A stretch of DNA of 64,000 nucleotides from Macrostomum lignano (Eukaryota). The position numbers and the translations under genes were made by a program. Of this stretch, positions 30,919 to 50,057 are shown piece after piece. The stretch lies in NCBI GenBank assembly GCA_002269645.1, contig NIVC01003215.1, positions 46,614-110,613 of the forward strand, in the 5' to 3' direction. Each line of letters opens with the position of its first letter. Position 1 is the stretch's first letter. The notes beneath the pieces are model-generated. The model did no database searches. It was not told the origin of the DNA and saw only the letters and a list, made by a program, of their open reading frames with translations.

Positions 30919-33900
30919 CTTGCCCTCGAACTCCACGCTGGTGACGCAGCAGGCGGAGCCGTCGATCATCACGTGACGAATGTCTTCCAGGCGGTGCCTG
31001 ACCTGGTACTTGGCCACCGCCGCGTCGTTGATTGCAATCTAATCGATCGTGGGCGGGGGGTGCAGCAAAGTGAATCTTTCGGGGTCAATCAGAATATTTT
31101 TTCATTTGGATCGACAAATAATATCATAGCCCTCACAATGTACTCGGTGTCCGTGGCCTCAAGCGACACTGTCTCAACGTCGCGGGCCAGCCGCTGGTCG
31201 AACCGGCAGGTCTCCTCGTCCCTGGCGACGCCCCGGTTGTCCGCCCAGGCGAGCGAGGCGAAGCCCTGCGCCAGGTTGACCTCGCAAACCAGCGGCTTGA
31301 GGCCGGAGTCGGCGGGACCGCAGCAGAGAGCGAGGCTCAGACTGAAATAGTAGTAGTAGTAGTAGTAGTAGTAGTAGTAGTAGTAGTAGTAGTAGTAGTA
31401 GTAGTAGTAGTAGTAGTAGTAGTAGTAGTAGTAGTAGTAGTAGTAGTAGTAGTAGTAGTAGTAGTAGTAGTAGTAGTAGTAGTAGTAGTAGTAGTAGTAG
31501 TAGTAGTAGTAGTAGTAGTAGTAGTAGTAGTAGTAGTAGTAGTAGTAGTAGTAGTAGTAGTAGTAGTAGTAGTAGTAGTAGTAGTAGTAGTAGTAGTAGT
31601 AGTAGTAGTAGTAGTAGTAGTAGTAGTAGTAGTAGTAGTAGTAGTAGTAGTAGTAGTAGTAGTAGTAGTAGTAGTAGTAGTAGTAGTAGTAGTAGTAGTA
31701 GTAGTAGTAGTAGTAGTAGTAGTAGTAGTAGTAGTAGTAGTAGTAGTAGTAGTAGTAGTAGTAGTAGTAGTAGTAGTAGTAGTAGTAGTAGTAGTAGTAG
31801 TAGTAGTAGTAGTAGTAGTAGTAGTAGTAGTAGTAGTAGTAGTAGTAGTAGTAGTAGTAGTAGTAGTAGTAGTAGTAGTAGTAGTAGTAGTAGTAGTAGT
31901 AGTAGTAGTAGTAGTAGTAGTAGTAGTAGTAGTAGTAGTAGTAGTAGTAGCGCTCACGTGACCGGCCGCTTCGGTTCCAGGTCGGCCATCAGCCGCACGG
32001 TGACGAAGCGCGAGTCGCGCAGGCTGACGGGGAACTGGTTGAAGTAGGGCAGCCCCACCTGCTCAGGGAAGCTGGCCTCGTAGAAGATGGCGCCGCCGGA
32101 CAGAACCAGGTGGGTGAGCCGACGCGGGTCGATCTGGTGCGGCAGGTTGGCGCCGCCCTCGGTACCGCCGAGCTGCACCTCGAAGCCGCCCAGCTTGTAG
32201 ACGATGCCGATGTCGAACTGCTGCATCGGCGCGAGCCCCGGCCTGGCCAGGGTGGTTGGCCGGCTCTGGCGGCCGCCCGCGGAACTGCTGAGGGTGATGG
32301 GGTTGCCGGGCTGGCAGCGCAGGCAGAAGCCGACGTCCGACTTGGCGGGGTCGCGACCGCAGGCGAGCGTCACCTCGCAGGCGGCGGCCTCGTCTGGCAG
32401 ACGGCCGGAGACGCGGACGCTGCGGCCGACCTGGAAGCTGGGTGGCAGCTGGCTGACCTTGGGCGCGCGCTGCGGGGTCCGGGGTGAGGGATCTGCGATA
32501 ATTTCTGAGCTGCAGTTCACTCTGCTGTGAGGACAGCAGCTCTGAGCTGCAGTTCACTCTGTTGTGATTGGGCAGCAGCTCTGAGCTGCAGTTCACCCTG
32601 TTGTGATTGGGCAGCAGCTCTGAGCTGCAGTTCACCCTGTTGTGATTGGGCAGCAGCTCTGAGCTGCAGTTCACCCTCTTGATCAGCAGCTCTGAGCTGC
32701 AGTTCCTTCTGTTCTACTTCAAAAACCACGTTGAGACCCCTATAAAAGACATCCGAAACGCGCAACTCAAAACCGCACCTTTTCTTTCCAAGAAACGTCC
32801 TTCAACTGGAAGTTGCCATCGATGAAGAAGTCCGTGATGTACTGTTTCTGGTTAGGCAGCTCGTAGGAGACCACCGGCTTGCCGTCCAGTTGAATCTGCG
32901 TTGAATTGATTGCGAGAGTCGCAGTTAATTAGAAACCATCCCAGTCAGTCAGGGACCGCGAATCGGGGACTGCTTGCCTTTACCTGAACGGACGAGTGGT
33001 CCAGCTTCAGCAGGATGTTGTTCAGCGCCGCCAGGCGAGGCAGCCGCTCCACGCGGGTGTCGCACACGAAGCCGCCGGTCTCCGGGGCCGTGCGGCCCAC
33101 CGAGACGGCTTCAGCGGCGGCGTCGATAACGCAGAGCATCGCTGCGCCCCTGTCGAAGCCGAAGCTTATTTTTGTTGTTGGCGGCGACTTGAGCATCTGC
33201 AGCTTCACCGAGATGGAGCTGATGAGCTCCAGCGAGTGCGGGAACTCCTCGCTGTAGGGCAGCTCCAGCTCTTCGGGGAACTCCACACCCTGGTACTCCG
33301 TGTGGCCGTCCAGGATCAGGTGGGTGAAGTTGGAGAACGGCACTCGGTGTGGGTGCACGCAGACAGCGTCCTCAAAGCTCACCTGGGGATCGGCGAGATG
33401 ATTGACATGTTTTTTTGTCTGTCTGTCTGTCTGTCTGTCTGTCTGTCTGTCTGTCTGTCTGTCTGTCTGTCTGTCTGTCTGTCTGTCTGTCTGTCTGTCT
33501 GTCTGTCTGTCTGTCTGTCTGTCTGTCTGTCTGTCTGTCTGTCTGTCTGTCTGTCTGTCTGTCTGTCTGTCTGTCTGTCTGTCTGTCTGTCTGTCTGTCT
33601 GTCTGTCTGTCCAACTCACATTGAAGCCGCTGGAGGTGGTCTGAATCTCCAGCCTGAAGTTGCCTCCTTGAAACCGGCTGGTTTTCGCCCGCTCCTCGGC
33701 CGTCCATCGGTTGCCATTGAACTGGCTGCAGGCCAGCACGGTGCTGCCCTCGTCCGGCCGCGCAGTGATCTGCACCCGGAACTCCTCCTCCTGGCCAGCC
33801 GGGCTGTTTGCGTTCTTCAGCGACACGGTTGTGCTGCAAATTATTGAAATTCAAAGTGACGGCCTTCGCGTCAGCTGGGACTACAGGTTTGCAAAATATT

Positions 33901-48900: not shown

Positions 48901-50057
48901 GAATAGACTAGATTGTACTGTTGTTAGACTAGACTAGATTGTACTATTGCTAGAATAGACTAGATTGTACTGTTGTTAGACTAGACTAGATTGTACTATT
49001 GCTAGAATAGACTAGATTGTACTGTTGTTAGACTAGACTAGATTGTACTGTTGTTAGACTAGACTAGATTTGACTATTGCTAGAATAAACTAGATTGTAC
49101 TGTTGTTAGACTAGACTAGATTGTACTATTGCTAGAATAGACTAGATTGTACTGTTGTTAGACTAGACTAGATTGTACTGTTGTTAGACTAGACTAGATT
49201 TGACTATTGTTAGACTAGACTAGACTAGACTAGACTGTACTGTTGTTAGACTAGACTAGCTTGGAATATGACTACTTGTACTTAAGTACTACTTGTACTA
49301 AGTTACTTTATTTTATGTAAAAATTGTGAAATACAAATTTTACCATTCTATAAGCATTTGTATCATTATAGACGCACCTCATAGCGCTCATTCTCCACCA
49401 GAATTTGCACGGTGAACGAGGAGCCGGTGCGGAATTCGCCTTTACTCTTGCCGGTTTTGAATCGGTCTCTGGCGCCGGGCTCCGGCTGACACAGGAGCTC
49501 AAAGTGTCCGCCCCGGTTGATGCTGATCCGCAGAGGGATCTGCGCCCGGCCGCCGGTCTGCTGCCTGCTGGCGAGCTCGAGCACCACTCTGTGGGGAGGG
49601 GCCGAGCATCGCATGGTTAAGCTAAGCTGATCAGCAGTCTGGGAGGGGCATCGCATAGTTAAGCTAAGCTGATCAGCAGTCTGGGAGGGGCATCGCATAG
49701 TTTAGCTAAGCTGATCAGCAGTCTGGGAGGGGCATTGCATGGTTTAGCTATGCTGATCAGCATTCTGGGAGGGGCATCGCATGGTTTAGCTATGCTGATC
49801 AACAGTCTGGGAGGGGCATCGCATGGTTTAGCTAAGCTGATCAGCAGTCTGGGAGGGGCATCGCATGGTTTAGCTAAGCTGATCAGCAGTCTGGGAGGGG
49901 CATCGCATGGTTTAGCTAAGCTGATCAACAGTCTGCGTGTCCGTGAATATGGAATACCTTCGGCCGAAACTCACCTGTGACCCGACAGAATTCCTTTAAT
50001 CTCCACGCAGTCGCCCTCGATAAGACCATCCGGTATGTCGTAAGTGAACTGAGTTCC
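30919..50057 (-). CDS. Giant (about 4,900 aa) galectin-like domain + AHNAK/periaxin-like repeat protein. Exons 50057-49975, 49588-49378, 48469-48256, 48097-37583, 37105-36033, 35436-34474, 34080-33992, 33833-33620, 33382-32984, 32895-32779, 32469-31958, 31341-31137, 31038-30919; extreme 5' and 3' ends unresolved
   Basis: All 12 joins are GT-AG and phase-matched (2,0,1,1,0,0,2,0,0,0,2,0). Galectin-like pieces include FTYDIPDGLIEGDCVEIKG, PVPFKAHLPESLRSGRRIVVYG, QFNGNRWTAEER..F, HPHRVPFSNFTHLILDG and INDAAVAKYQVRHRLEDIRHVMIDG. The central exon is KGPKVKGPHFKMPSFG...PDVDVD repeats. Frame breaks at about 43960-44150 and about 44540. Confidence 0.8.
31348..31950. repeat. Perfect (TAG)n microsatellite, about 201 units, filling an intron
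   Basis: Read directly. Source of the poly-Thr ORF. Confidence 0.98.
32505..32705. repeat. 39-bp intronic minisatellite
   Basis: Unit CTCTGAGCTGCAGTTCACCCTGTTGTGATTGGGCAGCAG, about 5 copies. Confidence 0.9.
33417..33610. repeat. (GTCT)n microsatellite, about 48 units, intronic
   Basis: Read directly, between donor 33619 and acceptor 33383 on -. Confidence 0.98.
36290..37020 (-). repeat. Coding 30-bp repeats (ELDVELSGEQ / ELDVEVSGRP)
   Basis: About 24 units within exon 37105-36033. Confidence 0.9.
38100..48000 (-). repeat. Coding AHNAK-like tandem array of 225-bp (75 aa) and 150-bp (50 aa) units
   Basis: Both unit types read from the translation. The + strand shadow ORFs recur at 225 and 375 bp spacing. 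Confidence 0.95.
48530..49260. repeat. 26-bp intronic minisatellite (TTGTACTGTTGTTAGACTAGACTAGA)n
   Basis: Read directly. Confidence 0.95.
49590..49935. repeat. 42-bp intronic minisatellite
   Basis: Unit GATCAGCAGTCTGGGAGGGGCATCGCATGGTTTAGCTAAGCT, about 8 copies. Confidence 0.93.

Follow-up and report, generated by a model that had tools for sequence, protein, structure and literature searches.

A putative giant gene of Macrostomum lignano with AHNAK-type repeats set between galectin folds

Vertebrate AHNAK, AHNAK2 and periaxin combine an N-terminal PDZ domain with a giant central region that is encoded by one very large exon, and in AHNAK the repeat unit of this region reportedly measures about 128 amino acids (aa). 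Tandem-repeat galectins, such as galectin-4, -8 and -9 or the Toxascaris leonina galectin (PDB 4hl0/5glt), form another described class. Here we describe a gene of the flatworm Macrostomum lignano that appears to unite components of both kinds. It lies on the minus strand of a 64,000-nucleotide (nt) stretch of contig NIVC01003215.1 (assembly GCA_002269645.1, positions 46,614 to 110,613), hereafter the window, and was rebuilt as a single gene with 16 coding exons, an ATG at 52797 and a stop at 28024. The rebuilt gene, Pfam and Foldseek support the domain order that an earlier reading of the letters had proposed (the original prediction), namely a galectin fold (G1), an array of AHNAK-type repeats, acidic ELDVE repeats, a basic linker with polyglutamine (polyQ) and four further galectin folds (G2 to G5). 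That one gene encodes this architecture is, in our estimation, very probable; the whole statement, that one M. lignano gene with this architecture works as an AHNAK-like cortical scaffold, we consider reasonably likely.

As in AHNAK, AHNAK2 and periaxin, the giant central region is encoded in one exon (48097-37583, 10,515 nt). With AHNAK it further shares tandem repeats rich in K, D, V, P and G, the motifs KGPKFKMP and PDVD, a heptad pattern with K(A/G)P, a period-2 alternation and the lack of a signal peptide. In contrast to all three proteins, a galectin fold sits at the N-terminus instead of PDZ, which was absent from all segments scanned with Pfam (the 268-aa N-terminus yielded Gal-bind_lectin only). 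Moreover, unlike in AHNAK, the repeat units are 75 and 50 aa long and the C-terminus consists of four galectin folds. The pairs G2-G3 and G4-G5 resemble two copies of a tandem-repeat galectin, whereas the presence of five domains within about 5,000 aa and the loss of the H-N-R / N / W-E-R contacts outside G2 set the protein apart from that class. The component kinds are known, and the assembled architecture, a predicted AHNAK-like giant scaffold with galectin-fold termini, is undescribed in searchable sources. The earlier claim that no such protein is known thus stands for the whole and has to be restricted for the parts: both ends are already in UniProt as 'Galectin' fragments, the M. lignano paralogue PAA47915.1 already has the frame of one plus four galectins, and in UniParc entry UPI0006014472 a galectin is already followed by AHNAK-type repeats.

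Gene model and exon structure

The N-terminal region of the predicted protein is 100% identical to UniProt A0A1I8GPI7 ('Galectin', 380 aa), and its C-terminal region is 99% identical to A0A1I8GPB3 (M. lignano 'Galectin domain-containing protein', 825 aa). Both entries are fragments, each breaking off within the repeats, and UniProt holds a second, near-identical copy for each of them. Exon boundaries were placed on the sequence from the open reading frame (ORF) listing and a three-frame translation; the introns are GT-AG throughout and every phase is compatible. As assembled, the coding length amounts to 14,952 nt, corresponding to 4,983 codons plus the stop. An in-frame stop lies 47 codons 5′ of the exon 1 ATG, with no earlier ATG between. 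The coding exons are as follows:

52741..52797, minus strand: coding exon 1, first ATG (MATNGDTVWLPTDYHERLK); donor GTGAGC; matches A0A1I8GPI7
51226..51363, minus strand: coding exon 2 (IILSEANSRVEQ...YCLWKK); junction peptides found in A0A1I8GPI7
50057-49975, minus strand: exon 3, first part of G1
49588-49378, minus strand: exon 4, second part of G1
48469-48256, minus strand: exon 5, end of G1 (48469-48362), then an acidic linker (48361-48256)
48097-37583, minus strand: exon 6, giant repeat exon, with a short basic lead-in, the array (~47996-38117) and a unique Ser-rich/basic tail (38116-37583)
37105-36033, minus strand: exon 7, acidic exon
35448-34474, minus strand: exon 8, basic/polyQ linker exon
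34080-33992 and 33833-33620, minus strand: exons 9 and 10 (G2)
33382-32984, minus strand: exon 11, end of G2 (to 33278) and start of G3 (from 33277)
32895-32779, minus strand: exon 12 (G3)
32469-31958, minus strand: exon 13, G4 (to 32068) and start of G5 (from 32067)
31341-31137 and 31038-30919, minus strand: exons 14 and 15 (G5)
28053-28024, minus strand: exon 16, last coding exon (TALLFSTCN, stop TGA); acceptor CTGCAG; agrees with the A0A1I8GPB3 C-terminus

Fourteen of the 15 junction-spanning peptides occur verbatim in A0A1I8GPI7 and A0A1I8GPB3, well above chance. The acceptors 48416 (third G1 exon) and 32492 (exon 13) were ruled out, as they break the frame; 48469 and 32469 agree with the UniProt models. 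A hexamer resembling a poly(A) signal is found at ~27411, 3′ of the stop.

The original prediction comprised 13 phase-matched exons within 30919-50057. All of them exist on the minus strand in the proposed order and correspond to exons 3-15, and the junctions 48256/48097, 37583/37105 and 34474/34080 were placed at exactly these positions here. The gene limits, however, proved too narrow: extra coding exons lie beyond both sides (52797-52741 and 51363-51226; 28053-28024), bringing the total to 16. The proposed single reading frame agrees overall, save for two frame breaks in the assembly of the giant exon.

Galectin folds, repeat array and linkers

The galectin profile used throughout was Pfam PF00337 (Gal-bind_lectin), with a cut-off of 22.1 bits. 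The five domains lie as follows:

48362..50057, minus strand: G1, three exons; 38.9 bits, E 6.9e-10, full-length match (1-132/132); splices present in A0A1I8GPI7
33278..34080, minus strand: G2, exons 34080-33992, 33833-33620 and 33382-33278; 54.4 bits, E 1.2e-14
32779..33277, minus strand: G3, exons 33277-32984 and 32895-32779; partial match, 13 bits; AlphaFold and Foldseek
32068..32469, minus strand: G4; 29.4 bits, E 5.9e-7
30919..32067, minus strand: G5, exons 32067-31958, 31341-31137 and 31038-30919; partial match, 18.2 bits, E 0.0018

G1, G2 and G4 exceed the cut-off, and a phmmer search of G2 against PDB retrieved the galectin 5glt/4hl0 (E 2e-12). The matches of G3 and G5 cover just the last third of the profile; the G5 of a paralogue scores 24.8 bits. 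In profile-profile comparisons with hhalign, G2 paired with G4 (96% probability) and G3 with G5 (89-92% over 130 columns), which indicates that G2-G3 and G4-G5 represent a duplicated two-domain unit. Since G3 showed no significant profile match to G2 or G4 (probability <3%), its fold was settled by structure prediction. AlphaFold modelled G3 alone with a predicted local distance difference test score (pLDDT) of 90.1 and a predicted template-modelling score of 0.84, and the top 50 Foldseek matches of this model in PDB are all galectin carbohydrate-recognition domains (template-modelling score 0.76-0.84, root-mean-square deviation 2.4-3.1 Å). In the AlphaFold model of the 825-aa fragment, built on the paralogue alignment, residues 1-264 are disordered and residues 265-820 are all-beta (pLDDT 50-88). 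Its best PDB matches are the tandem-repeat galectins Toxascaris 4hl0, galectin-8 and galectin-9, and galectin-7 is matched with a template-modelling score of 0.83-0.89. Within this model G5 is all-beta with low to moderate confidence, and it is counted as a galectin fold because of its homology to G3. The protein thus contains five galectin folds, the fifth by homology, in line with the galectin identity originally proposed for all five.

These folds were compared with the canonical sugar-binding motif H-x-N-x-R ... N ... W-x-x-E-x-R. When aligned to 5glt by HMMER, G2 retains the R, W, E and R of the motif, and its H, N and N are replaced by Q, T and S. No motif residue is kept in G1, G3, G4 and G5, as judged from their MAFFT alignment to hand-entered reference sequences of human galectin-1, -3 and -7. 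The residue set of a functional lectin was therefore not found, and partial retention is confined to G2. The absence of the canonical residues from four of the five domains fits the earlier proposal that the galectin folds may serve as binding heads rather than as lectins. Its baseline, that galectins have one or two and rarely four carbohydrate-recognition domains, is unsafe. Predicted teleost proteins of 2,000-3,800 aa from Anguilla, Ictalurus, Myxocyprinus and Conger (P0056, P0058, P0059 and P0061) contain up to 21 galectin-domain stretches, so that this gene is not the only case of a very large protein with many galectin domains.

The array of the giant exon (~38117 to 47996) shows Tandem Repeats Finder periods of 225, 150 and 375 nt and consists of 47 MPSFG units (31 clean 75-aa and 13 clean 50-aa units) with the consensus KGPKVKGPHFKMPSFGLKGPKVKGPDVDIDVDAPDVDVDVDVKKPDLDIDVKAPDVDVDIDTDVKLKKPDVDIDV. 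The AHNAK-type repeats put forward earlier are supported; their length by unit count is ~3,200 aa instead of ~3,300 aa. In composition the array is dominated by D (23%), V (17.5%), K (17%), P (11.5%) and G (7.6%). The heptad [DE]-hydrophobic-x-hydrophobic-K-[AGK]-P occurs 132 times, and we observed a strong period-2 alternation of hydrophobic and charged residues, as expected for amphipathic beta strands. Among the units, synonymous changes per site are 4-5 times as frequent as nonsynonymous changes (a ratio of nonsynonymous to synonymous rates of ~0.2), which indicates that the array is coding and under purifying selection. A phmmer search with the array yielded, beyond two flatworm proteins, about 50 matches, almost all of them to vertebrate AHNAK and AHNAK2, plus one amphioxus protein. 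E values range from 8e-56 to 1e-5 over these matches and from 8e-56 to 1e-8 for the AHNAK proteins, and BLASTP against a mammalian AHNAK fragment gave 39% identity over 209 aa (E 6e-33), scores that are inflated by the low complexity of the array. Repeat segments also matched DUF2807, DUF6470, FixG_C and other Pfam families, which we discounted as noise arising from low complexity.

Two linker exons follow. The acidic exon (36033..37105) has a pI (isoelectric point) of 4.05 and carries ~23 decapeptides ELDVELSG(E/R)(Q/P) at 37018-36328 (Tandem Repeats Finder period 30, 23 copies); A0A1I8GPB3 includes the 3′ portion of this exon and its junction with exon 8. The subsequent exon (34474..35448) is basic (pI 9.9) and bears the polyQ tract. 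In A0A1I8GPB3 the polyQ segment 35175-34660 (GT..AG, 516 nt, in frame) is removed as an intron, and it could be either an optional intron ('exitron') or an artefact of gene prediction.

Paralogues, one gene or two, and frame breaks

A HMMER search with the C-terminal fragment and cluster look-ups identified the M. lignano paralogues PAA47915.1 and PAA52624.1 (BOX15_Mlig025793g1, Mlig013397g1), with 58% identity, and A0A1I8J927, with 33% identity. They are colinear with the window gene across the four C-terminal galectin domains and resemble it in their G1-like head and exon order. PAA47915.1 (1,637 aa, partial) comprises a G1-like domain, a ~1,000-aa linker rich in K, R, Q and S and four galectins in one model. 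Likewise, at a paralogue locus on NIVC01003207.1 (L001) the G1 exons are followed by two linker exons, the first of 2.2 kb, and then by galectin exons, with an intron between the linker exons as in the window gene. Because model and locus share this order, the succession of G1, a giant linker exon and four galectins represents the frame of the family. In contrast to the window gene, the disordered linkers of these paralogues are devoid of AHNAK-type repeats and of the ELDVE array. Judged by sequence, the window gene is therefore best described as a family member in whose linker exon an AHNAK-type repeat has been amplified in tandem. A metagenome scan with the paralogue alignment gave 118 pattern matches, none of which was confirmed by tblastn. 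All three paralogue groups (P0001, P0055 and P0057) end in a short Cys-containing tail directly behind the last galectin domain (…FSTCN, …PSCCIN, …FCGICCQM…), a possible site of lipidation or membrane anchoring; no tail forms a classical CaaX box.

The combination of a galectin with AHNAK-type repeats is not confined to M. lignano, as UPI0006014472 (805 aa) has both. It begins with a galectin (30% identity to G1, E 1e-23, Pfam 37.8 bits), followed by a Ser/Lys-rich linker and 69-aa AHNAK-type repeats sharing 50% identity with the array of the window gene. These repeats include the sequence PDWKLPKF, which we take to resemble a PDW…MPKF motif of human AHNAK. A further AHNAK-like flatworm transcript is the Dugesia japonica expressed sequence tag 'similar to AHNAK-related protein', which is expressed in the epidermis, both dorsal and ventral, and increases after irradiation (PMC1896013); under the name Dj-ahnak it serves as an epithelial marker (PMC4014983). 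Within the searchable library, literature searches for Macrostomum with AHNAK or galectin returned no relevant paper, and those combining AHNAK with periaxin and invertebrate returned nothing relevant.

Several observations weigh against one intact gene related to AHNAK. The first group concerns the junction 37583/37105, which links the repeat exon to the acidic exon and is the sole junction that lacks support in either UniProt model; the tail of the repeat exon is covered by no database protein. Moreover, an in-frame stop at 37569 (…GSGKSY*) lies five codons beyond the 37583 donor, and a short isoform terminating there is possible. G1 and the AHNAK-type array could accordingly form one gene ending at 37569, and the acidic exon, the polyQ linker and the four galectins a separate one, as the two separate public fragments would suggest. 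We nevertheless consider two genes unlikely. The splice signals at 37583/37105 are strong (donor CCG|GTAAGT, a T-rich tract before the acceptor) and the phases compatible, the acidic exon has its first in-frame ATG only near its end, and A0A1I8GPB3 starts mid-repeat without a Met, which identifies it as a truncated model. These features favour one gene, and the strongest independent evidence for it is that PAA47915.1 and the paralogue locus join G1 to four galectins through linker exons. The current public models appear to split the gene into 'Galectin' fragments because repeats break assemblies.

The second group concerns the integrity of the giant exon, in which one patch is out of frame:

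43950..44490, minus strand: out-of-frame patch of the giant exon, delimited by the loss at ~44490 and the stretch 44145-43950

At ~44490 an A6 run reads A5, a 1-bp loss revealed by alignment to the copy 45494-45130, to which the stretch is otherwise 99.7% identical, and, compared with intact units, the ~200 bp of 44145-43950 show some ten small deletions besides a single gap of 58 bp. Consequently, ~170 codons are out of frame and contain 18 stops, all at residues 1437-1606. One 370-bp stretch of the array is 99.7% identical to another ~1 kb away, and the repeat number may have been inflated or collapsed by the assembly. If the stops in the patch are real, the gene, or this copy of it, is broken. 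This copy might then be a non-functional pseudogene, with the functional gene elsewhere in the duplicated M. lignano genome, and the two near-identical UniProt copies of each fragment imply that other copies exist. We regard a pseudogene as quite improbable, since the remaining ~10 kb of the giant exon and all other exons are open, the repeats are under purifying selection, and the flanking frames agree across the patch, so that the exon length stays a multiple of three (10515 = 3 x 3505). Furthermore, an A6-to-A5 change and clustered small deletions are typical of long-read consensus errors, and the frame breaks are probably artefacts of this kind at a repeat join of the assembly. Because the array assembly is defective at this join, the true number of repeats is uncertain.

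The third group concerns the kinship with AHNAK. The similarity is built on low-complexity repeats, for which convergence is conceivable; the repeats alone do not separate descent from convergence, and there is no flanking domain in common with vertebrate AHNAK. The sequence of UPI0006014472 ends inside its repeats, leaving the C-terminus truncated. Finally, Dj-ahnak is AHNAK-like by annotation and may not be an orthologue of the window gene.

Possible role, surroundings and significance

A hydropathy scan of the full rebuilt protein revealed neither a signal peptide nor a transmembrane segment, with no 19-residue window exceeding a mean Kyte-Doolittle hydropathy of 1.4. This extends the earlier observation made on part of the exons and suggests that the protein is most likely intracellular. 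By analogy with vertebrate AHNAK, it could work as a long polyionic rod or spacer beneath the plasma membrane, the ends of which would be anchored or cross-linked by terminal domains, with galectin folds in place of PDZ. Fully extended, the 3,200 aa of repeats would span roughly a micrometre. As four of the five galectin folds have lost the canonical beta-galactoside contacts, the ends would probably function as protein-binding or oligomerising modules. Such an AHNAK-like cortical mechanism is a tentative proposal, and the epidermis, taken from the planarian marker Dj-ahnak, is the leading guess for the tissue of expression.

Galectins commonly leave cells without a signal peptide, and the sugar site of G2 still has R, W, E and R, so that an unconventionally secreted structural protein of mucus, rhabdites, adhesive or matrix, in which galectins bind glycans and the extremely charged repeats (D 23%, K 17%) form a hydrated polymer, might be envisaged; it is very unlikely, as the sugar-binding residues are missing from four of the five domains, the repeats are of the kind found in AHNAK, which is cytoplasmic and cortical, Pfam scans revealed no Cys-rich or other extracellular module, and a protein of ~5,000 aa is an improbable cargo for non-classical export.

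Within the intracellular reading, a bolder version, which we rate as a long shot, would regard the AHNAK-type repeats as an old bilaterian module that flatworms couple to cytosolic galectin folds as an epidermal scaffold for membrane damage and the cortex. The galectin heads, at least G2, would then recognise glycans on ruptured membranes or specific cortical partners, and the micrometre-long polyionic rod would organise the machinery of repair or adhesion. If true, this would merge galectin damage sensing with AHNAK/dysferlin-type repair, which are separate in vertebrates.

Nearly all introns of the gene hold a micro- or minisatellite of their own, and these give rise to spurious long ORFs on either strand. 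Most of the intron between exons 13 and 14 is taken up by a perfect trinucleotide microsatellite of 201 copies (plus-strand TAG; 31348-31950, 603 bp, 100% matches), which is unusually long for a perfect array and might show instability or be difficult to assemble. The other intron satellites are:

33416-33611: (TGTC)x49
48522-49224: 26-bp unit x27
49606-49935: 42-bp unit x8
32504-32705: 39-bp unit x5
28809-30277: CT-rich 20/41-bp unit x70

Elsewhere in the window, two ORFs match Pfam domains:

25574-26074, plus strand: ORF with a caspase domain (PF00656, E 3.6e-31)
14867-15385, plus strand: leucine-rich-repeat ORF (LRR_4, E 1.6e-15)

The caspase ORF runs towards the 3′ end of the galectin-AHNAK gene in convergent orientation and lies amid long minisatellites (23867-26771). 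ORFs at 18139-19254 (plus strand) give the impression of a CCR4-type endonuclease/exonuclease/phosphatase domain, with no Pfam match. An ORF pair (MRRIRPKLSREVEKNRS... on the minus and MPGYSRNALSAARSHFDF... on the plus strand) occurs in two copies ~6.3 kb apart, at 56723-57222 and 63037-63449; Pfam returned no match for either copy, and the pair is probably either a dispersed repeat or the remnant of a transposon.

For those who work with public gene models, the locus is a practical warning: a repeat-rich gene is here fragmented under the name 'Galectin'. If the full-length product is confirmed, it would represent a previously undescribed domain architecture, in which galectin folds cap an AHNAK-type rod, and would clearly exemplify the use of galectin folds inside the cell as modules that are probably not sugar-binding. 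As M. lignano is amenable to transgenesis and RNA interference, tests of localisation and loss of function are feasible. Confirmation would also mean that protostomes possess AHNAK-like giant repeat scaffolds with other terminal modules, and the gene bears on how cortical 'rulers' may evolve, namely through repeats multiplying within a single linker exon of a family already in place.

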